Shown here piece after piece: positions 27,338 through 51,324 of a stretch of DNA of 64,000 nucleotides (the first letter of the stretch is position 1; every line of letters begins with the position of its first letter). Below the pieces are notes generated by a model, which had not been told where the DNA came from, searched no databases, and worked only from the letters and a program-made list of their open reading frames with translations. Position numbers and translations under genes: made by a program. The stretch comes from Orbicella franksi (lineage: Eukaryota), in contig OZ116700.1 in assembly GCA_964199315.1 (NCBI GenBank), positions 4,898,001-4,962,000 of the forward strand, in the 5' to 3' direction.

Positions 27338-28332
27338 CTGAAAATAAAAACAACTTGTTGCTGTGTAGCGCTGTGTGCCACTTTGAATTGCATTCGTCGA
27401 TAAAGTTAACTTACGGAAAGTGCTTATGTTTCGTTTTTGACAGGGACATTTCGGGAAAACCTCTTCATCTCTTTGCTATCCATGATCACACCCGTGTTAT
27501 GGCGCAGATGCACTTGGAAATGCTACGCGCGCGCGTGCGATTGTTTATTCAAAGAGAAGAATTCAATTGAACTGACGACAACTAACCGGCCAATCGTCTT
27601 GGCATAAAAGCAGTTATTAAACCATTTCAAACTAAATTTCTCGCTCTTCAATCTCGACATAGTTCACGGTTCAATCCTTTTCCAGAAAGAATTGCAGTAC
27701 TTCAATCAATAAAAATGACTGAACAAAACAATGCAAAGGCCTTTTTACGGATAAACAAAGAAATTCTTTCGATCTTTCCATTTGTTTATGCCACGTATCC
27801 CTGTTGTTTACTCAGCTGGAAAACCAAAACCCCGTAAAGGCTTCTTCAAAGACAAAACAATCAATTTTTGTGCTATAGCTTCCGCTTGTTTTTAGCGGGA
27901 TGTAACAATTTCGACAATAATTTCGACAATTACTTTAAAAAAGACTTAAAACGGACAAGGCTGATTATCGGAAGATCTCTTTTTCGGTTACATACTATAT
28001 TTCTTTAATTACGCCTCCAAAAGAAAACAAATATTTGAGGAATCGAAGAAATACAAGATAACGTGGAAGGAAGTCTGCTAAGTGTGGCAGGATGTCACGA
28101 ATTCGAAATTTTCATTTTTGTGAAATTTCAAATTTATTTTTCTTTTCACTGCGTACTTCTTTGGTGGTTTCTTTAAAAAAAGAACGCCTGAGCACAGGTT
28201 ATTCTACTGCGAGAAAATAAAGCAAGTTAGTGATACAATCAAGCCCGGCTTACTTTTAAGGGCTTGTAAAACACGATATGCTTATCAGCCCACGATATTT
28301 CACAGAGAGCGTCTAGAAGTTCCTTGTTGCTA

Positions 28333-28358
28333 TGACGTCATTCGGTTATTCACGTGAC
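28333..28358 (+). promoter_or_regulatory. CRE (TGACGTCA) and E-box/CLEAR-like (TCACGTGAC) pair upstream of MYO6
   Basis: Two perfect palindromic motifs 10 bp apart, about 130-150 bp before the ATG; function not shown. Confidence 0.45.
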
Positions 28359-28484
28359 CACAAACGCGACCCGGCAAAAAATAAAGTCGCTTGGTTGGCG
28401 TTAAGCTACTTTCGCCGACGCATTAGAATACTTCCTATTTAATAAATTGGTATGTTCGTCGGTATTTCAAGGTTTTAAGACACC

Positions 28485-31400
28485 ATGGATGGTGGAAAAA
28501 AAGTTTGGGTCCCTGACAACGAACATGGCTTTCGTCTGGGCGAAATCGTCGATCTTGGATCTGATACGATCACTGTTGAAGTGGATGGTGCTAAAGGGAA
28601 GGTTTGTGGAAAAGCTCTAGGAAACCTCATTGTTTTCCACAGTTCATAGGGAAAGTGTTATTTCGTTTTAAATCATCAAGGTGAAGGCTATTTGTGCACT
28701 CTTCCGTTAGGTCGTTACGGCTGCTTACGATCGAGTATTCCCGTCGGAGAAGGATAATACAAGAGACTTGGAAGACAACTGTGAGTTATATTTTTAAGTT
28801 TGTTAAGCCTCTGGGCAAATATTAAGCTTAATTTTATTTGAATTCGATCGAATCATAGACAATGAATCGCACGAAATACTAAAGCTTAAAACTGTAGATT
28901 ATATGCGCCTAATTTCGTTAAGTGTAGATTTTTATCGTTACAAAGTTTCTTTATGCGAGGTAAGCTTAAATTGTTTGTGAATATTAAAGTTCGGTTTGTT
29001 ATCGCATTTTTCACTTTAATTTGAAGATCGTGGCAGATGTTTTGACGATATTCGCTCAAAATCAATGCTTCAGTAGCAAATGAATTTTTCCCTAATCTTT
29101 ACTCATCGCACTGTCTCTTGCATTCACTAAAGATAACCGTGTATTCTCCTGTGCATATGAGATCATCTACTTCTCTGACACGGGCCGCTACAGTCCCTAA
29201 TGACATGTTTTAGGAACATGTAAATTGAGTGAATTTATAGTTTGGAATATTTTTGTAAAAAATTGATAAGATTTGGACCGCTGGTTGGACAATTTATTTA
29301 AGAAATAAAGAAGCCAAACTTGCTAAACCAAAACTAAAAAAAAAAGTAAAACAAAATTCAAAAAATATCAACAATGGATATTTATCTTTACAGTCTAATT
29401 TTTCCCTTGACATGGTGGACCCCTCAGAAATGAATTCATTCAGAAATGTACACATGCATGGACGTGTACTTGTAATAAGATTACAAGATGTCAATGGTTC
29501 AAGCCTCTAATTTTTATAGATATACATTTCCCTTTCAAAAAGTCTTGACAATTGGAAGGTAATGATGGGGTGGGGGGGGGGGGGGGAAGGGAGAAGGAGG
29601 GGTAGGGGGTTAGAGAGTGGTTGTCAAGGAGAATAACCCTAAATGTGTAGCTGCCAGTATGATTCATAGCTTTGCAGTTTATTTTGCTTTCTTTTGTAGA
29701 CGGGGATGTTTATCTGAAATTTGAGAAAAATTCGTCAAAGTACGTCCCTGGCTGTGGTTTTTCAAAGGGTGAATAACACTGTTCACTGGACAACACACTA
29801 TCTAGTAGATAGTGTAGTTTGTTTTGTCGACACTTATCCATTGTATAAAGATTTGTCAAGTGGATAATGTTATCCACCCTTTGAAGAACTGGGTCCTGTA
29901 GGAGAGCAATCAATTTTGGGGGCATGACCGCAAGAGATACAAACATGGGCTCTTTTGGTCCTGAGTGATATGTGACAGTGCTTTCTGAGAGGCCACATCC
30001 AGTAAAAACAAAAGAGATGATTGCTAAATACTGGTTAATTTTTTTACAGGTTCTTTGATGTTCCTCAATGAAGCCACATTACTGCACAACTTGAAAATTA
30101 GATACCAAAAAGACAAGATATATGTAAGTTTGAACTTTCTTTATACCACATAGTACATGTACATGACTGCAGTAGTTTTGATAGCATCTAAACTGAGGGA
30201 TGTATCGAATTGTGCGTGGGAAAGTGCCATCCAAAGCCAGACCTGGTAGCCTAGTGCATGTGACCAGATGTGTAAAATTAACATATACACATAACTATTT
30301 ATAAGTTTGATCATGATTTTTGTGTTTATTTTACAGACCTATGTTGCTAACATCTTGCTCGCCGTCAACCCATATCATGAGGTAAAAGAACTTTACTCAA
30401 AGGAGAAAATTAAACAGTATCATGGAAAGTCGCTGGGTGTGTTACCGCCACATGTGTTTGCCATTGGTGAGGATTTCATACTTCTTATAAATAAGTTTAT
30501 AATAACATGTACCAGTTGAAAGTAAAAGCCGTGGACGTAATGCACAGTGTTCAGCTTTCAATGCAACAAGGTTTGAGAAATGTAAAAATTTATACAGAAA
30601 GCATTATATGTACTACTACTTTTGGCATTCTGAAATAACTGGCTTATGGTAGTGTTACGCAGAGTTTTGCTTCATATGTGTAGTACAGGCATCCTAGCTT
30701 GCCCAGAAAGAGCTCAAACTCTCAATTTTAGGATCTTGAGTATCAGTGTGACACTCAGAACACTGTTTGTTTCTGCCTGATTATATTTTGGGAGGCAAAA
30801 ATGTTGTTCTTTAGCAGGGGTGGATTTTTAAGAACTTGGGGGACCATATGCTTGCCTTAGTTCACTCCTTTAAAATCTGCCAATAAATGAAATAAACTCA
30901 TGTTCCTGTATGCTGCAGGGCAGGTGTAGAATTTATTCAGGTAGGCTACATTGTACATTCTACAATCATGCTGCATCTTCTCTGCTTCAAGTCGTTCAAA
31001 TGCTTTACAGCATCCTGGCGTGTTGTTGCACAGTTGGAAGTGGCACTACAAAAATTATAATTCTTTATTTTTTTCTCAGGTGACAAGGCTTACAGAGACA
31101 TGAGAGCATACAAGCAGAGTCAGTCTTTGATTGTCAGTGGTAGGTGGTCTTGTTTTGTTGTTGCAAGTTGTGTCCCTGACTGTGCAATCTTCAGGAATTA
31201 GGTGTCATGCTGGCTTTATTAGCACAATTATTTCTATAACTGATGTTCAGTAATCTTTCTGTCCAGTGTTTCTATGTGTACAGTAGTTCTTCATTATTTG
31301 CTCAATCATGATATATGTACCAGGTTCACTTGCATGTACATAATTGTACACATTCTGTCTGTTTAAATAAATTTGCCAAACCCTGTTGATAATTATTGTT

Positions 31401-34400
31401 TTTCTTTTTTGTTCACTGACAGGTGAAAGTGGTGCTGGAAAAACAGAATCAACTAAGTATATTCTTAGGTGTGTGAATCAGAAGCATGTTTTAGAGAACT
31501 TGTAACCAGTTGACAGCTTGTAATAATAATACTCCTACAAGTACAATACATGTACCATGAAATTTATATCAGGGTTGTCAATAAGGGCTGTAACACCTGC
31601 TACAGCTGAATATGTTTGATGGGGCCTTGATGTTACGGGTGAACTGGACTAAAGTCAATACAATTTACCTAAAAGGTAACAAGTTTATTACAAATTTGAA
31701 GATTAAGGCTACAGTTGACTCAAAACTTAATGGCAACCCTGTATAAAGTTATTCTTGAACATCACATACACTGTACCTGCGCATGTATGATATTATTACA
31801 GGTATCTGACAGAATCCTGGGGATCAGGTGATCAAGGTCGCATTGAACAGAGGATTATTGAAGGTGCAGTTTGTGTCGCTAATAAACATAAAATAGAGAG
31901 TGCGCGTTAATATTAAAGGTTTCGGAATTCTTTACTTTTTCTGGGGAGTATGTACTGCAGTTAGTGTTAAATAAATAAAATGTTCTAGTCTGAACAGTTA
32001 ATGAATAATCAGATCAGTTAAAAGCATGGAGATTGAGTAAATTAGTGAAGATGCCAGTTTTGGTCAAAGGTGATGATGTCAGAAGTGAAAAAAAGGCCAA
32101 TGCTTGTCATGACCAATTACAGCCAGCACAGGAACTAATGGGTTATTCATAAAGTGACTGCCTCCAGTCCAAAAACTCCCTTTTTAGTGGTGATCTTTAT
32201 TTACTGGGCTAGAATTGGCCTAAGTTTCATCTTTTCTCAACAGCTAATCCCTTGCTCGAATCTTTTGGAAATGCCAAGACACTACGTAACATTAACAGCA
32301 GTAGGTTTGGGAAGTATGTGGAAGTTCACTTTAATGAAAAGGTATGATAAAAAGATAATAATATCTAATATTAATAAAGGGGGCTGGTAACAGTTTCCAG
32401 CACTTTTCTAACAGCTGTGCTTTGAAGGATGAATACTATCTCTGTTTAACAGGTGATGATACGTACAATTATTATTTAATCGTTAACTATGGTATCACAC
32501 AAATGCCCAATCATAAGTTAACAGGTTGCGGTCATCCTTTTTATATAATAGGTTACCATAGCAACAATGCAACTTGTTGAAAACACCCTTAATTTTAGCT
32601 TCAAGTGCTTATAACTCAAAAACAAGCTCTGTGACCAAATTTTTAGTATTGAATTGTGATAAGCATGATAAGACGCAGCTTTTTACAGAGTTTAAAAAAA
32701 TTCTGTTAAGGGGGTTCAGAGCCACCTTAAATTTTCAAAAATTTAATAAGCTTATCATCGTTGTAGATGATGAGTACAAAACCTTTTTATTTTTAAAATC
32801 TTTCTCTTTTCCTAATAATTAACAGGTCACAGTTGTTGGTGGGTTCATTTCACACTATCTTCTGGAGAAGTCTCGGATCTGCAAGCAAAGTAAAGGAGAG
32901 AGAAATTATCATGTGTTTTACAGACTCTGTGCAGGAGCACCTCAACAATTGAAGTCCAAACTTGGAATAACAAAAGCAGAAGATTTTCTGGTAAGTTGAA
33001 AGCACAATATTTATTACGGAGCATTTTTCACAGGGCCAGCAACCATGCAAATATATTGGAACACAAGAAAGTGTAACTTGTATGTAACCATATGAAAAGA
33101 GTGATGCTGTGATGCTGTATTATATCTCTGTCTACAAAACTCGTGATTATACTGTTGGGTCTGAGTGTCAGGTTCAAAGCTACTACATGTATCTCTGATT
33201 ACATGTAGGTTATAGCAGCTAGTAGAGTCATGTAGATTCACAAGTCTCATGTATGCATGGAGTCCAGTTTCCTATTACTTGCATGTTGTATTTTTGATTG
33301 AAAAGTATATACATTCAGGAAAATCTGAAATACTGTAGTAAAAAAAGCATAGCTTGCTTGTGTAGGATGATGGCAAAGACATTGTATCAACTTTTTCACC
33401 AAGCCCTTCGTGTGAATATTTTTCTTTTTTTCCCGTCTCATAGTACTTGAAACAAGGATCCATCAAAGACCCAAATCTTGATGACAAATCTGATTATCGC
33501 AGAATGGAGGAGTCCATGAACAAAGTGGGATTTTCAGAGGAGGAGAAAGCAAATATTTTCAAAGTGGTTGCTGCTGTGCTTCATGTTGGAAATATTGCCT
33601 TTGAGGACAGTGGAGACACTGAAGGTGTGCAGTGGCAAGTTTAGAACCTGTGTGATTCAAACTGGTGGTGAAAATGAACAAAATTAACAGATGGGGCCTG
33701 TTAACTTGAGAACTACAAGAAACAAATTTAATCGCAATCATATTTTACACAAATTAACTGTTCTGTAGTATGTTTGTAACTACCTGCACTTTTCTCGTCA
33801 ATTTGTTTCAATCTGACAGGTGAAACATTTACATGTAGCATTACATGGCTCAGTGTATAATGTAACACTGTGTTTACTAGGCTATTAACTTCTAGTTGCA
33901 AACTGATAAATATATTCTATTAAAAAGTGAGCTTCGCAGATTTTGTAGTAATTTTATTACATGTGATACAAATAACATGAATTTTCACAAAAAAAAAAAA
34001 TTAAAAAAAATAACATGAATTTTATAAGTCAAATTTTCTTTAATGTATACCCTCCCATAATTTGAGCTAATGAAATACAGTACAGGCCAAATGTAAGTTG
34101 ACAGTCTCCACTCAAAACTCGATCCTTGATACTCGATCCTTTCGAGAATTGAGAATCGAGTTTCGAGGCTCGAGTTTCAAGTTTCGAGTATCGAGTTTTG
34201 AGACACTCTGTTGTTACTCTGAAATGAACGACAATTAACTCCACATCGAAAGAAGTTCAACCAAGGGACAAAACAATCGATTTAAATAAGCCAACTGATT
34301 TACAAATGTAGAGTCGCTTACCGCCTCTAGAGTCGTGACTCGAGTGACTGTCAACTTACATTTGACCGGTACCTTATATGTACTTGTATTAATTTTATTT

Positions 34401-35421
34401 ATTAAAATCTAATGTTTTCATTTTTTTTCTTATTTAATATTTTTTCAGGTGGCTCGGTGGTGTCACCTAAAAGTACAAACTCTTTGAGTATCGCTGCACA
34501 GCTGTTGGATGTGTCACCTGAAGAGTTAAAGATGTCATTAACCACAAGAATGATGTCAGCTGGAGGGTCTCACATGAGGTCTGCTCAACATCAACACCAA
34601 ATATTGTCTGTATCATTTTAATTTGCTTTTAACCATTGACCACTAATCAAAATTAACACCGTAATCCATTAATCCATAATACAATATTAAACACATTTTA
34701 GAATGCTAGGTACCAGTTATTACCTCAGCACTATTGATGTTTACAATTTTCAAATCTACATGTAATAAATTGTACATACAGTAAATGTAAGTTTTGCTTG
34801 CCTAACATTGTAAGTAATGCTTTAGCCATCAAAATAATTCACCTAGCTAGAAGCTATCGTTTCATCCTTTCACTACATACTACAATATTGTAACATAAAC
34901 CCTCGTGGGTTTCAGCAGTAATCAATGTAAATAATATTGTGCTTGTTTATTAATTCTGTCACTGATGAGAATTAATACATTAATCTTAATTCAAATTGAA
35001 ATAGTTTAATGTACATTTAACTCACACAATTTCTAGTTATTTAAGGCTTACTCTAACAGGTTTTTGCTGTTGTTTGTTTTTTGCAGAGTGCCGCTGAAAC
35101 CAGAACAGGCTTGTGCTGCCCGAGATGCTTTGGCAAAAGCTCTTTACACCAAGCTGTTTGACCATATTGTCAGCCAGATTAACCAGTGCTTTCCTTTTAA
35201 GAATTCTTTCACTTTCATTGGTGTGTTGGACATTGCTGGCTTTGGTGAGTTTATTTAGTGATGTTGTCATCCCTTAATTTTTAGCCTTCTTAAATGATGT
35301 GATTGACTGAAAGCTATGTACAGTTTACTTTTAATTGTAATTTTAGCTTTTTGGCCTTTTTATTCCGTTTTTAATGTTGTCATGCGCATTTGAACATTTT
35401 ATGAAATTTGCACATTATAAA

Positions 35422-35466
<45 letters not shown>

Positions 35467-38400
35467 AGCCCCAAAATAATGCACACGCAAGAACTTCTTT
35501 TTTGCATCTCCAAGGCGGCAACTTCTTGTGGCTACTTGCAAGTCATCTGCGCAAAAATTTAGCAGGCGCACGAACCTCATCATACTGCAGGGGAATGTCT
35601 GCCCCTCTGGTCTGATTCAGCTCAGTCCACAAGCATATTAATAAAGCTCAATTTTGTTTACCTAGTCTGAGTTGCAGGAAATGTACATTTGTGAATGTTC
35701 TGAAAGTGCAGATGTTAAGTGAAACATTGATGTCTGTGGGCTAGCCCGTCCAGTTCTTCAAATATCATCAGCTAGCAGCAGTGTACTACTGCATAGGACT
35801 GTGGAGCAGTGCTAATGATTGTTTTCCTTTTGTACAGAATATTATGAATTCAACAGCTTTGAACAGTTTTGCATCAATTACTGCAATGAGAAACTCCAAC
35901 AGCTTTTTAATGATAGGATTCTTAAACAAGTAAGTTTAGATATAAACAAGATATTGCAAGGTCATGAATTATTAGATGCCAGGTGGTACCTTGACCAGTC
36001 TACATGTGTTCGCACACAGCATCGTCATTGTCATTATCATCGTTAGTATCGTCATCATCAAAGTAACCTTCGTCATTTTCATCATCGTCATCCCCATTTC
36101 TTTTTCGATACATTGCTGTTTTATTTGAAGTTTTGTTTGCCTGGAAGTGTAATGCAGTTTTTTCTCTCTTGTGCTAATAACAGGAGCAAGAGCTCTATGA
36201 CAAGGAAGGTCTGGGAGTCAAAACTGTTACATATGTTGACAATCAAGACTGCATTGGTGAGTTTACGCTCCAACAAGTACAACACTCTCACTTTCCCACT
36301 TGCACCCAGCTCATTGTTTTACCCACACCCACTTCTATCCAGGTCATTGTTACCCACCCTTACCCAGTTTCACCCAGGTCATTGTGTTACCCACCACCCA
36401 CCCCCCCCCCCCCACCACCACCCCACTTCCACCCAAGTCATTGTGTTACTCTCCACTTCCTCCCCGGTAATTGTGTTACTCTTCACTTCCACCTAGGTCA
36501 TTGTTTTACCCACAACTACTTCCATCCAAGTCATTGTGTTACTCTCCACTTCCTCCACGGTCATTGTGTTACTGTCCACTTCCACCTAGGTCATTGTTTT
36601 ACCCACACCCACTTCCATCCAAGTCATTGTGTTACTCTCCACTTCCTCCACGGTCATTGTGTTACTGTCCACTTCCACCTAGGTCATTGTTTTACCCACA
36701 ACTACTTCCATCCAAGTCATTGTTACCCACCCTCCCCCACTTCCACCCAGGTCATTGTGTTACCCACCTACTTCTGCCCAGATCATTGTGCTACACTGTG
36801 TTGTGTTCTTAAGGAAGACAGTTTTAATTACTCTTGCACTATCATAGTGCCTCTCTGTAAGGTTAACCAACAAAAGGAATCTAGAATGGACTACATGTAG
36901 CAACCCATGCAAGGGGATTGCACTGTACACAGAACTTTTAATTGCCACTTACTGTGATATGGAAGGTCTGGGTCACTTCCATAGATGAAAATAAATACTG
37001 TGGGATACCAATTAAACTAGATAAATTAAACTAAGTACTCTGAAGAAGGCAGCAACGGCAAAAACTTTCTATATTTAGTATCAGGGTCAACGAATACTAT
37101 TTCAGGCCTTCAGTTAGTAGGGGAGCAGCACATGGAAAACAGAATTTGTAGAAGTAGGAAATTCCTTGGGATTTTTTTTTAGTGTTTCTTCTTTCACTGT
37201 TCTCCCTGCTTATCCTGTTTCTCATGCTGCTCTCCACCTAACTGAATGGTTACTTTGCCTGTTCTCCCTGCTTATCCTGTTTCTCATGCTGCTCTCCACC
37301 TAACTGAATGGTTACTTTGCACCAAGTGTCTTTTGCTGTCAGATCTAGAGAGTCCGTTGTGTGGTCCATCCGAATTACACTTCTATTGTTTTACAAAATA
37401 AATAAGGATTACAATGTCCGTCAACTGCACCAATGCATTGCAGATCTGATTGAAGCCAAAAAGACAGGAATCATAGACATTCTGGATGAAGAGAGCAAAC
37501 TCCCTAAACCAACAGCAGAACACTTCACTCGGGAACTTCATCAGAAACACAAAAACCACTTCAGATTGGCGGTAAGTATTTGCTTCTGCGACTCCATACA
37601 TGAGAATGTGTGATTTGTTGGGAGAATCTATTAGTGGACAATTTTCTGTATTGTTATCACCTTATTGTGTAACAATATTGTTAAATATTGTCAGGACAAA
37701 TTGGATGTTGAAGCCCTAACTACATCTTCTGCCCGGTAATATTTCATAAAAGAACAAAGCCTTCACTTAAAACATAGATGAATTCTCAGTAGATGAATGA
37801 GTTGTGTTTATGAACAAACCTAGAAAGGTTGTAAATCAAACTATTCATAACTTTGTTTTAATACCAGATGGCCATTTTCTTGTCTCTCATTTCAGCTCCC
37901 GAGAAAGTCTCATTTAATCTACCACAAGAAAATGAGAGATGATGAGGGATTTCTTATTAGACATTTCGCCGGAGCCGTCTGCTATCAGACAGTAAGTTGA
38001 CCATTCTACAGTTTCTGGTTCTGATCTCAAAGTCCTTCGCTTACTGCTCCCAGTTAAAATTTTACCGCAGTAAATGTTAAATACAAAATTATATACAACT
38101 GGAAAATTGTTAGCTGTCAAGAATCTCCACTAGGATTTACAAGCACTCCGGTATCCGGTTTGTAAGCAGTATGACTTACATGTACGGTGTTGTGCTATAG
38201 TAATGCAAGCAACACTCGACGAATTGTGTTTTTTGTCCCTGCGATTTTTCAGCGTAATTTCTTGAAATTTCACAACGGAAAGGTGACGCTTTTTGGGTGG
38301 AACGTAACAAAAAAGTAACGATTTTTTCGCTGACAGTAACGAAAATTCGATCACTTGAAAATTCCGACAGACGAAAAAGCGGACTACTTTAGCGAAAATT

Positions 38401-41400
38401 TGATTTAATTGAAATCTCCTGCAAACGAAACAAAACGTACAAAATCTCAGACAGTACTTCCCTGCTCTCTCTCCCCGTGAGCGGGCTTTGTAACACTTAG
38501 CAGCTGTTTCTGGGAAGCAGAGACTCAGTGGGATTCTGCTGTTGCACTGTTTTTACTTACTCCCGACATTCTATGATGGTTGTTTCACAGGCGGAGTTTA
38601 TAGAGAAAGACAATGATGCTTTACACAAAGATCTTGAAGAACTGATACAGGACAGCAAGGATGCTTTCCTAAAGAGCCTGTTCCCGGGCGTGGCAACCAA
38701 AAAGAATGACATCGGTTCAATGTCATTTGGAAATGCCATCAACAGGGTCGGCAGCAAGAAACTGGGATTTATCAGCGTTGGAAACAAGTTCAGGGTAATC
38801 TTGTTTATACCACAGTTTGAATTGTTTTCTTGTGTTTGAGACGTGCAGGACACTGGGTACAAGAAGAAGAAATTGGGGGGCCTTGACCTTCGGGCAAGCT
38901 CTAACTACAGAATGTGTGATGTACTAGCCCGAAAATTATTCTTACCAGACCCCCAAAGCTCGTCTCTTACAGTACTCTTGTAATTTGAATTTCCTCCAAA
39001 AGTTTGCCAAGAAACTTCACTTGCCCATTGGGAAGTGACGGACAAAATCCACCAGCCCGACTGGAACATTTACCGTAGCCCGGGTTATTGAACAGGACTT
39101 TCTTTGCATACTGCGGAGATGTTACATTGTACTAAACTCGGAAATGGGATAAGAGTAATGGTGTTAGGGTTAAGATTAAGAAAAAGGTATTGGTAGGGTA
39201 GGGGGTGAGGGTTACGGTTTAAGTCTTTTCCTTTCCCAAACCTACTCTTACATGTACCCTTAAGCCTTAAGCCTAATCTTACCTTACCTTACCTTATTCC
39301 CTGTCTCAGCAACATCTGATCTGCACATTTTACATGTGCGGCCAATTGAGTTAACTTATATTTTCTGTCAACAGACACAGCTGAATCAACTGATGGAAAA
39401 ACTCGGCAACACTGTACGTGAAAACCTTTTAAAAGTTTTAAATGTTTAAAATGTTGCGTTAGTTTTAAATCAGGCGTCATTTAATATATCTGGGGGATCT
39501 TTGGCCAATTGACTGGTTACGACGTTGGTGTTGTAATCCGCAGTTCCGAGCCGGATTTGTTCTTGGTAGTCTCCAGATCAACTCTTGATCGTCGCTTTTT
39601 AAATACCCAACTGTCGGCCCTCCGTCAATAAGAATGCTTCAAATGTCACATTCGAAGTTCAACATACTTGTGTTTTTTTTGTGTGTGTGTGACTGCGTGG
39701 CATTCTCTGGCCGTAGTTTTGAGGTAGTTGTGACTGCTATAATCAAGCATAATTTTCATGAACATCTTAAACGAGAAACACCGGGAACGAAATTTTGAGA
39801 TTTACATGTAGTCAGGAACAAGACGCTTACCAAAGGAATTTAATGTGGTAAAAGATAGCGCCTTATATCTAACTCTTGTTGTTTACCAGGGTGCAAGTTT
39901 CATTCGATGCATCAAACCGAACGGAAAAATGTGTGCTCGGGATTTTGAAGGCGGCTCCATCTTGAGTCAGTTGGAATGCGCGGGCATGGTGTCTGTTTTG
40001 AATTTGATGCAGGATGGCTGGCCATCCAGGGCGCCCTTCAAAGATCTCTATCAAATGTGAGTGGAAAGCTGTGCAAGTAAAACAAAGAACTGAAGTGATT
40101 TGTTGAGTTGTGTTGTGTCGTGTAGAGTACAGGTAGCAGACGCTGGTTTCATGGTTACTCGAGAAAGGGAGTAAAAGAAACCTCTTCTACATGGTATTAA
40201 GGTTCTTTTTCGGTTGGCATAGATGATTTTACCTTTCAGCTTTGCGAAAGCAGTAGAAATGTGTCTCTGTAGCATTAATTGTGTTAATTACTTAGTTGGT
40301 GAAAATTTGCAAGTGAAGTGGCGAGAACTTGAAGATAGATAGTCCGTGACTCAGGTTCCTCTCAAAATATCCAAACCGTGTAGAAAATCCAGCATAACGT
40401 AAATTTACAGGAAGAAGCCTGCATTGTAAGTTTGTTCACCAGGGGAGCAATGAGTTGAAATTGCTTACGAGCCTTAAAGGAGCTCAGTCGCAATATTTAG
40501 AGTTGTTTTGGCCACGTACAAAATTACCTTTAAATTGAAGGAAACCTGAAAATAATAGTTTACTAAGACAGAAAAACACGAAGGAGATAATAATAAACTA
40601 TAAAGGAACAAGGATGTTTAGGGATGGAGAAGATTGACACGGATTACAAACAACTAATTTGAACAATTTTATGCTAAACTTTTCAAAATGTACAAACCGT
40701 GACGTAAAATTATAGGCTTTGCCATTGGACATTGGAGAGAACTTGACGCCACTAGTTTTGTCTTCAGCGCTGGCGCTAGAATGGACTGTTATAATCTGAT
40801 GCTGTCATGCTTTTGTTTTGGTTTCAGGTACAAAGACTATTTACCTCCTCGACTTGCACGACTCGATCCAAGAATGTTTTGCAAGGTCATCATTGAAGTT
40901 CCTGTTGTTTTGGCTTTTTGTTCCTTGGCTAGTTCTTTAACTTTAATAATTACTTTGTTGTTGTTGTTGTTTTTTTTTAGGCGCTGTTTCACGCCCTTGG
41001 TATGGATGACAAAGATTACAAGTTTGGTCTTTCCAAGATCTTTTTCCGGCCTGGCAAGGTTAGTGTAGAAAAAAAACACTGTTACGACGGGAATTACGTT
41101 TCTCTGAGCTCTTCTTGCATGCATGTTAGTGCAACGTTAAACATTGCCTGCAGTGGACTCTCGACACCTTTGTTGAAACAAGCTTTGAAGGTTTGACTTA
41201 TGTGAATTAAGGCGAGTGAAAAGCAGGACGGAGGGAGATGGGGCGAAAAGAGGAGTAACATACTCTTTTCAGGGAGTGCGCGGGACTCCGGATCGAGTGG
41301 TCCGGGTTCGAGCGCTGGCTAGGGATATTGTGTTGTGTTCTCAGGCAAGATACTTTACTCTCACAGTGCCTCTCTTCACCCAGGTGTATAAATGGGTACC

Positions 41401-44400
41401 GGGGAATTTTGGGGGCGACCTGACAGAATGCAGTGGAGTAACTTGCGATGGATTAACATCCCATTAGGGGGAAGTAGTAATACTCCTAGCCGCTTCATGC
41501 TACAGAAACCGGAGTTAAGTGCCAAGGGTTAAGGACCAGTTGGGTTTAAGAGACGTTGCTTTTTTTACTATGGAGAAGAGGGCAGGTTACATGCTGGGCG
41601 ACAGATGGCAATTGTGGTACTTAATATGTCTCTTTTTTTCATCGAAAGTTTGCAGAGTTTGATGAGATCATGCATTCTGACCCTGAGAGCCTGAAAAACA
41701 TCATTTCGAAAGTTCTTACCTGGTTGATCAGAACACGGTGGAGACGAGCCATCTGGGGAACACTGTCCGTCATTAAATGTAAGAGTGGATCACTACAAGT
41801 TCTTATTTAGGCCTTTAGTTCATAACCTACGGAACACTGAAGAATCATTGTCAGTAAAATTTCTGGAGCCAGTAGTTCAGTTTGGAAACCGCTTGCTGCG
41901 TTTTTTCGTAGAAGAGTAAGAATCGCAAAGTCATCGATGCATCTGAAAATGTCCCTTGTTTCTGTTGCCGTAAGTGGAAAAACAACAAAACAATAACAAC
42001 AAGCGCGGGGAGGAAACGACGTTTCAGTGCCATCCTTGGACCATTTTCAAGTTGAATGTAACACAATAAAAAATTGAATTTATGCTGAAGTTGAGGTCAT
42101 AAAAGAAAATGTTTCGAGACTAAAATAATTGTTCATTGCTAATCTATTTGTTTAGTGGTTTGCACGCATGTACAGTAATTATCATTATGCTTCAGAATAT
42201 CGCACCTTTATGAACACTAAACAATTATTTTAGTCTTATATATTCTATTTTGTACTCTCAATATCAGTTAAAAATGTCGCCAGGATAACACAGAAATGTC
42301 GCTCCCTGTTTCTGCCTGCGAGCTGGCTCTTCTCGCAGGCTAAAGATATTGTAGAACAAGAGGGAATGCTTTTTCAGTCTGAGCAAGGAATTTCCTCTAG
42401 TTGTTGTTAAGTGTTTTTAACTGTGTTCATTTTTTCATTTCAGTGATGAAGAAGATTGAATTCCGGGCAACAGCAATTATTCGTATTCAGAAAACTGTTA
42501 AAATGTTTTTGGCGATCTGTCGCCACAAACCTCGGTAGGTATCTTCAAAAGTGATAGGAGAGAGATAAAGCACCACAACCGTGGTCAACGACGCAAATAA
42601 TTTTGCTGTTGATTATGTTTGTCTTTTCATAAAGTAGCAAATTCATATGTCAGAAAAAAACAAAAGCTAAAAACCGCCACGTTCACAACATGTGCGAAGC
42701 CATTCCTCGTTTCGTGGCGACATATACCAGCTGTTAGACATGTGATTTTGCCTTTCTCAGAAAAAAACAAACAAACAAACAAAACGCGCTGCTTGCAATT
42801 TGTCTTGCACCGAAACAAAAAGCATTCCATCTCGGATTTAGTGTCTTTGCTACTTTTGTTGATAGCCATTTAGTCACATCTAATTTATGATATCTATTTT
42901 TTTCCCTAACAGTTCATGCTTGTAACTCGTTTCAATTTTTTAAACTCTTTTTATATAACTATTTCAACTACTAGACATTAGTTTTTTTTAACTCTATTTT
43001 TATAACTATTTTAAACTATTAGACATTTTATATTTTTAGAAATTGTATTTAGCAGGGCCCCTCTGGATACCAGCCACTGTGCTGAATGGGCCACCCTGCA
43101 TAAATAAAGTTTTACCTACCTACCTACCTACCTACCACATTTCCCTTTATGTCGTTCAAGTTGGGTGTTTTTGGGAATTTGACGTCGCTCTTTCACTTGG
43201 TTATAGTTATCAAGGCGTCATCAAAATCCGAAGACTACAGGTTCAACTTGATACCTTGGGAAAGTTGGGTAAGATGCAATTATTCGCTAGTTATCTAATC
43301 ATAGTTTTTGCCGATGGTTTTCAAACTAAGCATAGGTATAGGTTACTGTGTTATCGATTACAAACTGTAATAATATACCCTCAGTAGCAATCAGTCCGCG
43401 GTTTCGGCCAGTTGCATGTTTCCTCGCACTTATCACTGCACGCTAAACATTTTCCCGCACTCGCCACAGGGACTGTGGGAACACACTTTCAAACCCTTGC
43501 CAGTGGTTACATGTTTTCTTGCCCTTGCACTGGTTACACAGTTTCCCGCGCTTGCCGCCTGTTATATAATATCCCGCGCTTGCTACGCCACCGGTTACAC
43601 AATTTCCGGTGCTCACCATCGGTAAGCGTTTTCCCGCGCTTTTAGCAAGTGGCATATTTTGCTTTTAAGTATTGACTGGTTGATTATTACAGGGATCTCT
43701 TTTTTGTAACCGTTTTTCGCAGCCATGTGTATTAAAATGCCCTCAGGCTTGTACATTCTCTGATAGATCCTACTTACACATTTTCTTCTCCTGTTAGTGG
43801 GATCGCTGAAGAAAGACCAAAACGTGCTGGCTAAAAATGTAGAAGGACTAAAAAGAGCCATCGACGATGCTGTTATTAAAGTCAAGGTACAACACCAGCA
43901 AAGTGGGCCATTTGGCAAACTTTAATAAGATAGCTTTGTGTCTGCTTAATGGCTACCTTTCCATTGATACATATGGCACTGTCACTAATGCATGGCAATG
44001 AGCACTCTCTAAAACAGTAATTGTTTCTTCTCTACTGCAGAACACTCTGATGAAGCGAGACGCTATCGATGCAATGTACTTCGATCTTGTCGGGAAATTG
44101 AACAAACAATTGAAGGAAGTGGAACAGCGAGTAGAACAGCAGAAGATCGAAGAAGAACAAGAAAGGCTACGAAAAATACAAGAACAAATGGAACTGGAGA
44201 GAAAGAGAAGAGAAGAAGAGGAACGGAAGAGAAAGCAAGAAGAAGAGGAGAGAAAATTGTAAGTAAATGGCGGTTACTATGCACTTTCAACCGGCCTCGG
44301 CCATTTTCGTTTGGCTCGTCACGCAATCACTACAACACAAACGAATGGCAGGAGATAGAAGAGGGATTGTTCGTGACTAAACCAAAGGATAAACGGAACT

Positions 44401-47400
44401 TTACAGGTTACACAGCACGTTTTTAGGAGAAAGATACTTGTACATGCATGTGCAAGTTAACATCATTTTTGTATTTTGTAACTCATAGCAAAGGTGGAAA
44501 TAATTTTGTAGGGTGTTAAAGTGACTAGTGTCACAGATGTTTACTGATTGTGACCCACTAATTATGGACTTCTTACTTTTTTGGTACACAGGAGAATGGA
44601 AATGGAGGCGAGACGGAAACTGGAAGAGGAAGAACAGCTCAAACGGGAAGAAGAAGAAAGAAAGAGAAGAGAACGAGAAGAGGCTGACAGACAGGTCCAG
44701 GTGGGCAGACAGATAGAAAGTCGCCAGTGGGCAGGCAGGCAGGCAGGCAGGCAGACAGAGAGACAGACAGAGAGACAGACATGACTGCAGGCAGCCAGGA
44801 AGTGAAGGAAGGCATGAAAACAGCGAGTCAATAAAACACTTCGTAAATTATTAACTCGGAATTGAGAAAGGTAAATTTTGATAGTGGATTTGGGAAACCT
44901 GACGCTTTGAGAGTTAGCCCTTCTTTGGAGCAAAAATCTGTAAGACAGTCAGTGAGTACAGTCAGTGAGTCAGTCAGACTAAGAGACAGACAGACAACCC
45001 CAGGGACAACCAGACAGAAGGACTGGCAGACAGACAGACGGACAGACATATCGGCCGACAGACTGGCAGACAGAGTCAGTGGCAGACAGACGGAACGACA
45101 GATAAATGGGTCGGTGACCAGTCAGTCAGGCGGATAGACTAAACAAGACTAGCTTGCCACTCTCCTCCTCCCATTCACATGTTTGCCCAAGTTTGAAATC
45201 CTAGTTGTTTCTCAAGATCGGACAGCTCGCCTACAACATGTCAATGGATACGTTTCTATCGATCCATTTTAGGCTTTAAAGGCTAAAGAAGAGCAAGCTG
45301 CGAGAGAAGAGGAACAGCGAAGGTGAGTCTCGATTTTGATCACGTCATAACTACGATAAGAACAAAACTTGGCACACGGAATATTTACCAGTACAGCAGT
45401 GCACCTTGTAGAGTGATCATTGCTGACCTCATTATTTACATTTTTTCCTCACTTACATACGACTTTGCACAGAGAAGGCATCGTGCTATGTACGAATTGA
45501 CTCCAAACATTTGAAGAGCTTGTGAAACTTAGTTGCTGAAGTTTTTAGCTCTTTGAGTGAGTGTAATATTCAGGGAGAAATTGGCTTTCAAAAACTGCAA
45601 AATGTCTGGATGCCCAAAGCACTAATTAATAAGCTCAAACACTGTTTGTAAAATGTTGAGGTTTTTAACCCGGGTCATACAAAAAGTGTTCAATACACTG
45701 GGCTCAAAAATGTTGCAACAGTATGCCCTTTCAACATTCAGAACTGATGTTTCTCTAGTTTGATGAGAAATTGAATCACCGTTATGCTACTGCGGCAAAT
45801 ATTGTAAACAAAGAGTCCCTAATAAGTAGTCTGCAAAGCAATTGCGTCAAAGGCCAGTGAAAACAGGCACCACGAGTATAAATAGGAAAAGTCAAAACTG
45901 ATAAGATATATTTACATCGGTTGAAAGCTAAAACAATGGTTTGTATTCAAACAGTACAATAATTATTAATCGATCACCGATCACTGCTGAGTTCAAATAC
46001 TTGTATTCGTTCCCAGACTAGCCATGACTGAACAGGAGCGCAGGGACCGGGAACTAGCCTTAAGACTTGCACAGGACCCTGATGCTGTGGACACAGAAGC
46101 GGCGCAACAGGTCCCCCAGTCACCAATTCAGAGGTAAGCTGACAACTTTATCTGTATCAATAGACCCTTTTAAGGGTTTTTTTTTTCGCCACGTTCCAGT
46201 GTAGTATTCATGCCTTATAAGGGCTCCAACATTGACATTTCAAGACCCGAATGCAAGCTTGAGGAGTAGTATATGAGGGAATGCGATTGCACTGTTACAG
46301 GAATTGCACGAAGCCGGATGGCTTCCTAGCTCCGACAGACAAAGTCTGTTGAAACCAAAACACTTCGCTTAGAGGAACAAACTTAGTGGTTGTAGGAGGA
46401 TAACGGAATGTCAATTAGCTTCTTCAGAATTAACAGTTTTGTAAAGTGCAAAATATGATTTGTAGACCTCATATACAAAACTGGCATGATTCTCGGTCAG
46501 GTCGAGGTCGCTCCGCCGCTCTTACTTCGTCCTCTCCCAAGGAAAAGGATCTTACTGATCTAATTTAGCGGAACATAGCTGTGTGGGAAGCGTGTTGTCG
46601 ATTTTCGAAGTTTTTAATATTTATTTTTGAAAACATTCCTCGCAAAATTCAGCAAGGTTGTTCAAAAAAATGTATGCGTTATCGCTGCAGGGTCTATAAG
46701 CCTCAAAAGAGACAACTTTGCCTCAACACTGAATATCTATCTTCTTGCCAAATCCTGTCGATGCCTGTTTGCACCAGAATCTACGTTTTGCGCTAAAATT
46801 AGAATCCTCCATTTTTGTGCAGAGCGACACCAAACCGAGAGAAAAAGAAGCACGACTTAACGTCGTGGAAATACGCGGAGTTACGTGACACTATTAACAC
46901 TTCATGCGGTGAGTTTTATAATCCCCTGTCTTCCCCTCTGAGTATGTAGGAAATTCTGTTTAAGTAGGCTAAGTACTCCGTCAGTTCCATGGCTGTTACT
47001 GAGTACCCCATTTTTTTGAGGACAAGAATGCTGTTACCCTCGAAGGACCCTGTTTCGGGAAGAGTTGTAAAGTCGACTAAATTAAGGCTTTAAGACACAC
47101 TACTTAGGCCGGTTCCGATTAAAATTAACTATCGAAATATAAATGAAATAGTCAAAAATATATATATCATGTGGTTAAGGAGTGCTCACGGTCAAAATGA
47201 GCCGAAAAAGAGTAGAAAAATAACTTTGTATGAGTACGTAGTTCAGATGTTCTTTTGTATCTGTTCATTCACTCTGCCACTGCCCCAGTGCAAGAGCTCC
47301 CATAAATCTCGTGATCTAACCTCGTTAGCTGGCTTTTTTTCCCCCAGATATTGAGCTTTTGGAAGCTTGCCGACAGGAATTCCATCGCCGACTCAAGGTA

Positions 47401-48676
47401 TACCACCAGTGGAAGAAACAGAACAAGGGCCGAGTGACAGACCCTCAGGGAGCCCCTCAAAGGGCCCCTCAAGACATCGTGCAAGCAGGTAAGTTCTTTT
47501 GCACTTGAAAAAGGACCCGGAAGGCCATTTAGACAATCTAGGACCAATATCATTTACGGGACAAGAACAAAAGTCCTCCAACTGAAGCGTTGACTTATAG
47601 ACTCTCTTTTATTTCTGTTATATCTTGCAGCGGAAAACGCCCCACCCCTTCCACCCCGACCCAGTCGCCAGGAACAGACTGCCACCCCATCCCTGCCCCC
47701 ACGCAGGCCTCAGAGGTATTTCCGTGTGCCGTTCATGCGCCGTTCAAATCAGTATCGAGACACCGACTTCAAGAAGCAGGGCTTGTGGTAAGTGTCAACA
47801 CCATCTATTGGTATCTTATTTTTTACAGAAATAAACTTTGACAGCTTTTACCGTAAAGAAAGTGGGTTTTTTAAAATTTCCTTTTTGCTTTAAAAGCGAC
47901 GGCCACTAGTCACTCTTGGGTTCGGTCACATCTGGGGAGGCAGCGTGGCCCAATGGCTAGGGAGCCGGACTTGAAATCTGGAGATCGCGTTTTCAAGTCC
48001 CACTCTGACCACTAAGCTTGAGTTGTTTCTCGGTGGTCCCGAGTTTAACTCCTCGGTCATGTTTGTAAATAGCCAACTGGTCTGCCTCCTGCCAGTTGGG
48101 ATTTTTAAGCCTGTTGTTTTTAGTTGATATATTTGGTTCTTTCAGTATAATAAGTTGCAGGCTTGTGAGCTAGCTACGTAGGTGTAGCTACGCGCATTGA
48201 CCACCATTAACAACAACATCTGAGCCATTAAATTTGGTGGGGGGGAGGTCATTTTCGGAGAGGAGCTTTTGATCTTCTTTGTTAACGGTACTTTCGACGC
48301 GCAAAGTTTCTCCCTACTTGAGAAAAGCGATGTGTGACATGGGTCGCCGTGACATTGGTTACGCAAAGTAGACGATACAAGCGAGTAACGTCACATGTCA
48401 CGCCACGTGCGGTGTATCTGTTGCAGGTATGCACACTTTGATGGACAATGGATCGCGCGCCAAATGGAGCTGCACCCAGGACAGCCTGCCCTGCTGTTGG
48501 TGGCTGGCGAGGACGACCTGGACATGTGCGAGCTGAGTCTTGACGAGACAAGACTGAGCATGCGTCAGGGAGCTGAAATCACTCTCAGAGATTTTGAAAT
48601 AGAGTGGCAGAGAAATGGAGGAGCTCCCAGACAGTACCAAGCCAAAATGTACCAGCAACAGTTTTCAAATCAATGA
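28485..48676 (+). CDS. MYO6: Unconventional myosin VI, 33 coding exons, 3720 nt including stop (1239 aa)
   Basis: Exons: 28485-28601, 28711-28780, 30050-30123, 30337-30466, 31080-31139, 31423-31468, 31802-31863, 32244-32341, 32826-32990, 33444-33624, 34449-34578, 35087-35244, 35838-35929, 36184-36256, 37444-37571, 37896-37991, 38591-38794, 39375-39413, 39890-40056, 40828-40885, 40981-41058, 41649-41778, 42444-42534, 43207-43268, 43798-43886, 44041-44258, 44592-44694, 45273-45322, 46017-46133, 46823-46908, 47348-47488, 47631-47787, 48427-48676. P-loop [21 protein letters not shown], insert-2 ([11 protein letters not shown]), IQ motif, ER/K SAH, MIU ([13 protein letters not shown]), [16 protein letters not shown] motif, [17 protein letters not shown]. 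Confidence 0.97.
29748..29898. mobile_element. Decayed hairpin MITE
   Basis: ttcaaagggtgaataac / gttatccaccctttgaa. Confidence 0.65.
34081..34371. mobile_element. TA-flanked MITE with TCGAG subrepeats
   Basis: tacaggccaaatgtaagttgacagtc / gactgtcaacttacatttgaccggta. Confidence 0.8.
35422..35465. repeat. (TAT)n microsatellite
   Basis: Direct reading. Confidence 0.95.
36340..36795. repeat. About 31-bp minisatellite with a 93-bp higher-order period, in a MYO6 intron
   Basis: ggtcattgttttacccac recurs at 36496, 36589 and 36682; basic unit gtcattgtgttac..ccacttcc. Confidence 0.9.
37197..37320. repeat. Perfect 62-bp tandem duplication
   Basis: ctgttctccctgcttatcc..ggttactttgc present twice. Confidence 0.95.
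41271..41522 (+). mobile_element. tRNA-derived SINE (5'-truncated)
   Basis: ccgggttcgagcgctggc B-box region; core shared with 25210-25504. Confidence 0.8.
43410..43660. repeat. Degenerate about 30-bp tandem repeat (tttcccgcgctt..ggttac)
   Basis: Motif recurs about 6 times. Confidence 0.7.
44695..45140. repeat. Compound (GGCA)/(GACA)/(GTCA) tetranucleotide tracts
   Basis: Direct reading; begins at the donor of the MYO6 SAH exon. Confidence 0.85.
47936..48125 (+). mobile_element. tRNA-derived SINE, second family
   Basis: ggaggcagcgtggcccaatggctaggg..ttcaagtccc tRNA-like head plus tail aaatagccaactggtctgcctcc. Confidence 0.75.
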
Positions 48677-51324
48677 GAAGAACAATGCCGGCCAAATGTA
48701 TGGAGTAAAGAAGGGTTAGGGAAGGAAACATGACATCATTTAGCTGCTAAAGAATTCGTTAGTCTTTTAATCTCATATGAATTGTTCGTACCACGATGTT
48801 TATACCTCCATTACAGAGTCACCTCTTGCCTGTAATTCAAGCAATGCCTGGTGTTTAACCTCGATTGAGTTCGATCTGCATGAAAATAACGATACATTAA
48901 AATTCCTTTTGGTTTGAGAGGTTTTTCACTAGACTTTGTTTTAAGACAAAGGCGACCGCGGAATGGTCAGTTGCGTTTGTTGTAGTCATAGGATGCTCAT
49001 TAAATCAATCATTTGTGCAATACTTTTGTTTTAAAGTACACGGTTCGGATAAATCAGGTGGGGCCATGTTGCTTGGATAAAACTATAGTAACGTTGAAAA
49101 TGACAGTTAAGATAATTTTTAAAATGTACTGTGTTGTAATATAATTCAGCTCGGTGAAAGTCGACTTTAGCCAGTTGTTGGTGAAGCGGGCGGAACAAAA
49201 AGCGGAAAATAAAACATAAAGAAAATAAACGCGTCAAGTAACCCAAGAGGGAGTTTAATGCCTGGTGCAGTCCTTCTTTTCTCTGGTTCATAGTCTAGAG
49301 CCTGGAACTGGCTAACTCGAATGTAGTGTTAGTATTAGTTTTCTAATTTAGTCAGAGACGCATAAATTGACGGGCAAGGTAGGGCAGTTCACTGGAAGAT
49401 TTGAACGAAAATGTCATTTGACCGCACCGCCAGAATTCCTTTTGGTTTCTTCTTTCAATTAGATTTCCAAAACCCACTGATTCAAATGTAAAAGTATTAG
49501 CATAATAAAAGTCATCCTTTAAAAAGGATACTGGTCATTTTGGTCAAACAATACAGCCGTGCCTACCACGCACTGGGATTTAATGCATCGGTTTTTTCGT
49601 ATTTGTTTGGACAAATAATGTAAAGGAAAATCAAACATCCGAAACACTAGACTTGTGAAATGGAATAAACCAACGGGTTAATTATCATCTCCTGTCAAAC
49701 AGGCTCTAAGCGTGTTTCAGTCTTACGAGGTAAGGTCCAAATCATGCTCTTTGAGGTGACTCAGTCACGCTCAGTCACGCCAATTTAAGTGATTCTGTCA
49801 CGCTGGGTCATGCTTTACCGTTCTAGGTCACGAAATTTTTCATTCACACTATTTCACTTCAATTTATCATGACGCCATGTCACACTAGTTCATTAATAGG
49901 TCACGCTATTTCAGGTAACTTCGCCACTACAAATCACGCTATTTGAGGTGGTTCTTTGGCATGTAAACTAATTTCCAAATTCCATCGAGCGGACTAAAAT
50001 TGGACAAATCACTTTCGAGTCATCCAAAGGGCCATCATTTCATTAACGAAATTATCTTGGACATTTGATGACTAATTGAATTTTCTCCTTTACAATTAGA
50101 GATAGGCGTGACACTAAAAATGTGAATTGCTACCATTGAATTTAGGGAAATGTTTCAATGCTTAAGTTTTATTACAGCAGTTAGTTACGGTTAGTTAAAT
50201 TAATTTATCAATAATTACATTTCTTTGAAGGGAAACTCTTAGATTGAGTTGACTGAAAACTGATTTCAAGAATTTGAAGTGGTGAAAACTGCAGACCCAA
50301 ATTATGGAACGAAATTGTTTGTAGTGTTTAACAGAAATTGTAGGGAAGTGGGGAAGATATTCAAAGTTGTTGAAATTCATTTCAATTTTCACGCAAATAT
50401 TTGTTTTGAAGCGACCGTCAAAGCTACTAGGATATGAGAGTTTTTGAGAGTTCTTTTTCTTTTGCTTTTTATATCTATGCCTTTTTTTATTCGTGAGGTC
50501 GAGAAAAGTTTGCAAAATTGGAAAGTTTGACAACTTTTCTCGGTACAAGGTGAGCTATGCAAGTACTACGCACAAAGAAATGCATTATTGAAAGGAAATA
50601 TAAAATGTTTTCTAGTTTAGAATCGATGCACAAGTAATACAGTTCTATGGGTTGATTATTTAATATCTGAATTTATTTATTAACTGATTAAGTTAAGTTC
50701 ATTGTTGGCACATTTTCGTAGAGGCACTCAGAGTTTCCAGGTCTTTCTATTGAATCAAAAGATAGCATTCGCAAGTGGACTGACAAGAGACGACAGGAAG
50801 TTAGTTCACGCTGCTTAGCAACGACTCTATGTTGGAACTTAAGATTGGGCGAGCTTGCGACTTCTGAGTGTTTCAACGAAGATTGACAAAATGGCATGTT
50901 TTTTCATTCTGTTTTAGCGTTTGTATGAGTTTCAAATGGACCTCATTACTAGTAATTATTAATTTATTATCAGTAATTTAATACGCTCTGTTAAAGTCCA
51001 CGCTTTGTGAGCAAGATACAAGGGAGTGGAACTAGGCGTGAATCTTATAATTACTTTAGCTTTTGCTGGATTGTCGTTTGCTTATCTTGTTTGGAGACAG
51101 AATAGTTCAGTTAACAATTCTCAGTGTTTCTTTGAAGAAAAATAGATTAGAATTCGTAACAGAATCTATTTATGTTGAGAATAGAAAACTTTTGTGCGTG
51201 TTTGTGAACTCTTACGGATATTTGTGGGGCATCTTTCAATTTGCCTCTCGTCTGAACGAAGAAATAGTTTTCATTTTGCCTCAGGGCAGACACCTGCTGG
51301 TCTACTGTTAGGTATATATTTCAG

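Follow-up and report, generated by a model that had tools for sequence, protein, structure and literature searches.

The myosin VI gene of Orbicella franksi

We analyzed a 64,000-nucleotide (nt) stretch of the genome of the coral Orbicella franksi (positions 4,898,001 to 4,962,000 of contig OZ116700.1), referred to as the window herein. A tblastn search with bilaterian myosin VI proteins revealed a complete myosin VI gene on its + strand at about 28482-48667. The features of this gene are collected in Table 1; exon ends outside 31000-36500 are approximate. The gene differs from its mammalian counterparts at the site of insert-1. As described in PMC11306250, insert-1 is a 26-residue insert beside the nucleotide pocket; when it is deleted, adenosine triphosphate (ATP) binds faster, probably because Leu310 at the pocket mouth is released. 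In the coral, the two exons that flank this site, referred to as exon A and exon B, are joined directly. Coral myosin VI is a natural, expressed, insert-1-less motor protein.

Otherwise, the coral gene is an ordinary myosin VI orthologue. In a search of solved structures, the top 19 matches in the PDB for exons A and B were all myosin VI (E ∼1e-15 to 1e-19), whereas the next myosin class followed at E ∼1e-12 for exon A and ∼1e-8 for exon B. Mammalian (pig/human) MYO6, for instance PDB 2BKH, 2V26, and 8W41, was the best structural match for every coral exon tested. The P-loop GESGAGKT, switch I NSSRFGK, and switch II DIAGFE are intact across the RNA-supported frame and the exon upstream of it, as expected for a competent motor. 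Together with insert-2, the IQ motif, and the cargo-binding domain with its motif, these elements are common to the coral and mammalian proteins, and the coral tail carries a stretch rich in Glu, Arg, and Lys at the place of the charged helix of mammalian myosin VI. Over its full length, the insert-2 exon (41649-41777) can be aligned to pig residues 763-805, and all 12 of its PDB matches are myosin VI, which confirms the original prediction that this "reverse gear" (given there as 41649-41778) is intact. Pfam MYO6_lever scored 25.6 bits on this lone 43-residue exon, which is below the curated whole-protein cut-off of 27.3. The cargo-binding domain PF16521 was recognized in the last coding exon (Table 1), and a maximum-likelihood tree placed the coral between choanoflagellate class VI and bilaterian MYO6. 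Based on the conservation of insert-2, movement towards the minus (pointed) end of actin is probably retained. Judged by insert-1 as a mark of class VI, the coral gene falls short, in DNA as well as in RNA.

The absence can be read directly from the exons. Exon A matched pig/human myosin VI residues 219-271 and exon B matched residues 300-358. Because the two exons match only the flanks, the 27-residue insert-1 block (residues 273-299), which corresponds at the level of the exon to insert-1 as delimited by structure (residues 278-303), has no coral counterpart. The 453-nt intron between them contains no N. Neither its translation in three frames nor a complete list of its in-frame AG..GT/GC candidates yielded an insert-1-like reading frame.

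We compared four RNA runs with window positions 31000-36500. The junction 32990>33444, which is flanked by GT..AG, was covered by 18 raw polyA reads with 15 different start positions (run X23). In addition, a 763-nt contig from run X10 spans 32824-32989, 33443-33622, and 34447-34576 with zero mismatches. RNA depth was 0-0.5 within the intron versus 4-13 on exons A and B, and no junction into or out of the interior of the intron was listed for these runs. RNA supports eight exons from 31802 to 36256. Each of them is preceded by AG, and GT follows seven of them; the end of the last, 36256, is a loose end in the RNA. Spliced together, the eight form one open reading frame, which contains switch I, the A|B junction, and switch II.

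The original prediction had singled out 33034-33072 as an in-frame micro-exon candidate that is faintly insert-like. We rejected this candidate, which lacks an RNA junction, needs an upstream intron of 43 nt, and bears no likeness to the bilaterian insert consensus described below. Accordingly, of the two junctions at issue, 32990>33444 was found in the RNA and 32990>33034 was not seen. As a separate observation, RNA-contig depth spiked within introns at 31920-32103, 32712-32746, and 35322-35410, reaching up to ∼1100 in summed word depth (run X9). Many of the reads in these regions run on into unlike sequence, and one joint goes backwards (35351/2>35322). These regions are most likely repeat elements transcribed elsewhere and not parts of the myosin VI gene.

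The 5′ half of the gene is present a second time, as a partial tandem duplicate 123 kilobases (kb) upstream on the same contig (G000:C3:4803061-4811090; loci L007 and L008). This copy is equivalent to window positions 28300-36300 at 96-97% DNA identity, while the 3′ parts of the gene (41000-42600 and 47300-48700) are single copy. The exon A and exon B proteins of the duplicate are identical to those of the window. Its A-B intron, at 539 nt, is likewise without an insert-like frame; the introns of the two copies are 96% identical overall but differ by insertions and deletions and contain no conserved coding island. The upstream copy represents a truncated duplicate or else a haplotype that the assembly kept as a separate copy. 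RNA reads may stem from the window gene or from the upstream copy, and the junction is the same for the two. Taken together, the genome sequence, the RNA junctions, and the partial second copy bear out the predicted natural insert-1-less myosin VI, and the peptides and coordinates first given for exon A, exon B, and 33034-33072 proved exact on translation.

Table 1. Features of the Orbicella franksi myosin VI gene, in window positions.
Feature	Positions	Strand	Basis
Whole myosin VI gene, from N-terminal SH3-like exon to cargo-binding-domain exon	28482-48667	+	tblastn; Pfam
Myosin_N domain, first exon	28482-28580	+	Pfam match
End of P-loop (GESGAGKT) exon	31416-31468	+	tblastn; donor 31468 backed by RNA junction to 31802
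RNA-supported exon	31802-31863	+	RNA junctions 31468>31802, 31863>32244
Switch I exon (..NSSRFGKY..), directly 5′ of exon A	32244-32341	+	RNA junctions 31863>32244, 32341>32826, GT..AG
Exon A, 165 nt, phase 0 at both ends, C-terminal ..KAEDFL, equivalent to pig/human residues 219-272	32826-32990	+	translation, PDB match, RNA
Single GT..AG intron, 453 nt, at the site of the bilaterian 81-nt insert-1 exon	32991-33443	+	translation, RNA depth
Rejected micro-exon candidate, not an exon	33034-33072	+	no RNA junction
Exon B, 181 nt, equivalent to pig/human residues 300-358	33444-33624	+	translation, PDB match, RNA
Codon AAT (Asn) at the mammalian Leu310 position	33474-33476	+	alignment, DPNLDD vs DPLLDD
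Four further RNA-verified exons including switch II (LDIAGFE): 34449-34578, 35087-35244, 35838-35929, 36184-36256	34449-36256	+	RNA junctions, continuous frame
Insert-2 "reverse gear" exon (FAEFD...WLIRTRWRR...LSVIK)	41649-41778	+	PDB, Pfam MYO6_lever
IQ (calmodulin-binding) motif exon	42446-42535	+	tblastn; approximate coordinates
Myosin-VI_CBD (PF16521), last coding exon	48428-48667	+	Pfam 104.6 bits, E 2.9e-30

Elsewhere in the gene, short interspersed repeats occupy parts of the introns at ∼41276-41524 and ∼47937-48224, each with >2000 candidate copies in the genome at 80-87% identity. Outside the gene, window positions 59751-59885 are 135 N, an assembly gap or a masked stretch.

Insert-1 among class VI myosins

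For comparison, we gathered 275 full-length class VI proteins by homology searches. The queries were the Priapulus model P0075 in full, its residues 205-345, and a profile (A6) built from choanoflagellate, amphioxus, and coral exons, with the best 120 matches taken for each. The resulting set is nearly all bilaterian (vertebrates, amphioxus, molluscs, annelids, nemerteans, rotifers, arthropods, and nematodes) with a few choanoflagellate proteins. Exactly 27 residues separate the end of exon A from the start of exon B in 242 of the 275 proteins, and a few others have 24, 25, or 30 residues at this site. The inserts share a strong consensus (percent conserved: Y98 L97 G98 C78 T92 Q79 Y86 F100 ... 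R71 K82 S98). The human block as given in the original prediction is present in the primate protein P0444, where it ends ...RKSPE. Two further sequences that carry the insert, one from Capitella and one of crustacean type, came from DataS1 of PMC3942036.

In 12 of the 275 proteins, all of them predictions, the insert is excised exactly, leaving zero residues at the site. These include pig isoform X9 (P0255), Pacific oyster isoform X5 (P0181; in the same species, isoform X2 retains the block), and apple snail isoform X2 (P0167). Other insert-less predicted models are P0241, P0244, P0249, P0256, P0267-P0269, and P0308, among them several from fish and birds. Further isoforms from these species retain the insert. 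Since the predicted isoforms excise exactly 27 residues, the pattern fits an 81-nt phase-0 cassette exon in bilaterians, and the pig, oyster, and snail isoforms are consistent with such an exon as described in the original prediction. If these skipping isoforms are real, bilaterians also make natural insert-1-less motors by exon skipping. P0075, a predicted model of 926 residues that also belongs to the 12, was considered as a true bilaterian loss and rejected, as the model probably skips the exon. In six bilaterian-type genomic fragments (P0087, P0111, P0128, P0131, P0132, and P0145), a splice acceptor immediately precedes the YLxxG of the insert, which joins exon B without an intron. Because no intron lies between them, the insert-1 exon has been fused to the next exon in some lineages.

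Three choanoflagellate proteins, P0322 and P0323 (both Helgoeca nana) and P0344, showed a clean 27-column alignment gap at insert-1. The two from Helgoeca nana were reached by a cluster look-up from an insert-less fragment. All three carry the Pfam domains Myosin_head, MYO6_lever, and Myosin-VI_CBD. The class VI protein of Capsaspora owczarzaki, found in DataS1 of PMC3942036, reads ..PDKFRYLKSGTTTPLKGLDDKGDF.. at this site, without insert-1, and has insert-2 and the cargo-binding motif. Like the coral protein, Helgoeca nana and Capsaspora class VI thus combine the lever with insert-2 and the cargo-binding domain but have no insert-1, and the Capsaspora junction runs ..F-R-Y-L-K-S-G... The motor domains of the choanoflagellate and Capsaspora proteins are ∼45-50% identical to that of the coral.

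Two other features of the choanoflagellate proteins were apparent. P0322, P0323, and P0344 have an SH2 domain (PF00017, ∼50 bits) in the tail, between the lever and the cargo-binding domain, whereas the animal proteins do not. P0322 and P0323 differ in the N-terminal motor, including the equivalent of exons A and B, and are identical from soon after switch II; this pattern suggests alternative exons or chimeric transcript assemblies.

A search with exon B as query returned mostly single-exon fragments, which pointed to the contigs on which they lie. Five further genomic loci came from such metagenome or read-archive contigs with fragments like exon B. At each locus, a single GT..AG intron separates exon A from exon B with no exon in between, and none of the introns contains an insert-like frame. 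The intron measures ∼134 nt in spX (L009-L011), 73 nt in spY (L012-L014), ∼670 nt in spZ1 (L015), 249 nt in spZ2 (L016 and L017), and 212 nt in spZ3 (L018). The introns of spX and spY leave no physical room for an 81-nt exon. A Myosin-VI_CBD gene fragment lies downstream at L015. Contigs L001-L004 from another relative (82% identity in exon B) reach only ∼500 nt upstream, short of exon A, and are not informative.

The maximum-likelihood tree was computed from ∼250 motor residues and read with the choanoflagellates as outgroup. The order of branching was choanoflagellates, spZ1 with spZ3, then ((spZ2,(coral, spX, spY)), Bilateria). Every insert-bearing sequence fell in the bilaterian clade, which had support of 89/77, and one change of state was enough in 92% of bootstrap trees. 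This is moderate evidence, not proof, that spX, spY, and spZ1-spZ3 represent cnidarians and earlier-branching animals.

Insert-1, Leu310, and the nucleotide pocket

The coral junction can be compared with engineered proteins of known structure. Pig myosin VI deleted for insert-1 (PDB 2VAS, 2VB6, 2X51, 4DBQ, and 4PJJ) lacks 26 residues, while the coral protein lacks 27. Because the constructs are 26 residues shorter at this point by their PDB chain coordinates, the coral junction is collinear with them within one residue. Unlike the pig construct, the coral protein is a natural, expressed product that has evolved without the insert, and it is also without the Leu310 side chain. We know of no study of insert-1 by any route other than its deletion from the pig protein.

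At the Leu310 position, 225 of 258 insert-bearing proteins have Leu, Val, Ile, or Met. The coral has Asn and the cnidarian-like fragments have Asn or Ser. Since both insert-1 and the equivalent of Leu310 are missing, the coral nucleotide pocket would be less obstructed than that of mammalian myosin VI. By analogy with the pig deletion, the coral motor is predicted to bind ATP and exchange nucleotide faster, to have a lower duty ratio, and to show weaker gating between its heads than mammalian myosin VI. A further difference lies at the end of exon A, where the Ser267 phosphorylation site of vertebrates is replaced (LGITKAEDF in the coral vs LHLSSPDNF).

Origin of insert-1 and the definition of class VI

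Taken together, we consider it highly probable that the coral myosin VI, ordinary and expressed as it is, never had insert-1, that its absence is ancestral, and that the insert was gained on the bilaterian stem. The absence is read as ancestral because unicellular relatives of animals and the non-bilaterian-like loci share the direct A-B arrangement. Exon B starts at the same phase-0 position in all genomes compared, exon A ends likewise wherever it was reached, and one choanoflagellate-like genomic fragment also begins at the phase-0 position of exon B. From these shared boundaries, it follows that the intron is older than the insert and that the new exon arose within it. The proposed history would run as follows. 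In the coral lineage, the A-B intron would always have been a simple noncoding one, with transcripts joining A to B. On the bilaterian stem, an 81-nt phase-0 exon would have been born inside the ancient phase-0 intron that separates exon A (..F-x) from exon B (YLxxG..), and this single gain could account for the observed distribution. Insert-2, the lever, and the cargo-binding domain would then predate insert-1. The original prediction had proposed that the absence is the pre-bilaterian state. It gains support from the choanoflagellates, from Capsaspora, from the five loci placed outside Bilateria, and from the single bilaterian clade in which nearly all members have the block; the alignment of choanoflagellate with bilaterian proteins shows the block missing in the former and near-universal in the latter.

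How the exon was born is a separate matter, and an origin by duplication of exon B, which would leave the coral in the pre-duplication state, was part of the same prediction. The insert exon and exon B both start with Y-L-x-x-G, such that a five-residue repeat flanks the block, but the likeness ends there. Positions 6-27 of the two gave a mean BLOSUM62 score of -20.0 versus -18.7 ± 5.3 for shuffled sequences, with 58% of shuffles scoring as high, and hhalign returned a probability of 1.8%. A short duplication around the acceptor could have produced the repeated pentapeptide, and such a duplication followed by exonization of the intron fits equally well, with the two routes indistinguishable after >500 million years. 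We therefore regard duplication of the whole exon as unlikely, and this part of the prediction did not hold up.

Secondary loss would place insert-1 in the first class VI myosin or the first animals and have the coral lineage delete the 81-nt exon. The bilaterian exon is a clean phase-0 cassette that can be removed without a break in the frame, and some predicted bilaterian isoforms skip it exactly. Against this stand the choanoflagellate and Capsaspora class VI proteins, which have no insert, and the five loci outside Bilateria, which lack it at no fewer than two deep positions, so that several independent losses would be needed versus one gain. This makes secondary loss very improbable. Least credible of all is an insert-1-like exon that is limited to a tissue or stage or was simply missed, such as 33034-33072: the junction evidence comes from few samples and small in-frame AG..GT candidates do occur in the intron, but no candidate resembles the consensus, whose Y, L, G, T, and F residues and K-S pair show 82-100% conservation each, no RNA junctions or coverage were seen inside the intron, the related introns of 73 and ∼134 nt are too short for an 81-nt exon, and the intron of the duplicate copy, 96% identical with indels, lacks a conserved coding island.

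Several points weigh against a bilaterian gain and the function we attach to it. The five loci are placed outside Bilateria by a moderately supported tree of ∼250 residues. Proteins from named cnidarians, sponges, placozoans, and ctenophores were not among the matches listed in our homology searches, which were filled by bilaterians. As the junction counts come from one run of raw reads and one contig, a minor or tissue-specific isoform below ∼10% could escape them. The Leu310 position is Gln in 19 of the 258 insert-bearing proteins, including annelids and nemerteans; because it is not strictly hydrophobic in bilaterians, its co-variation with insert-1 is loose. Lastly, the kinetics and motility ascribed to a natural insert-less myosin VI are extrapolated from the engineered pig deletion.

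Papers from 2024 still count insert-1 among the elements that define class VI; it has been named class-defining (PMC11040104) and MYO6-specific (PMC11306250). We found no description of its distribution outside Bilateria in the open-access full-text literature, and large myosin surveys are silent on it, so its recognition as bilaterian-specific may be new. Because choanoflagellate and Capsaspora proteins with the class VI lever and cargo-binding domain lack the insert, we take an insert-1 criterion to define the bilaterian subclade and not the class. On balance, we lean towards a broader view in which insert-1 is a bilaterian invention and not a hallmark of class VI, perhaps started as an optional cassette, that myosin VI acquired long after its insert-2 reverse gear. 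Corals, other non-bilaterian animals, and choanoflagellates would then have natural insert-1-less motors that bind ATP fast and are probably weak in gating or processivity. A start as an optional cassette would be possible because exact skipping of the insert is still seen in some predicted isoforms of pig, oyster, snail, fish, and birds.

For annotation of non-bilaterian myosins, insert-1 is unsuited as a criterion of membership in class VI. Recombinant motors from organisms without the insert offer ready material for comparison with the mammalian protein. The insert-less class VI series would separate two adaptations in time, with the reversal of direction by insert-2 being old and the slowing of nucleotide exchange and gating by insert-1 with Leu310 being bilaterian. 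This raises the question of whether a minus-end-directed motor can be processive without the gate or whether processive dimeric stepping has existed only since the bilaterians.

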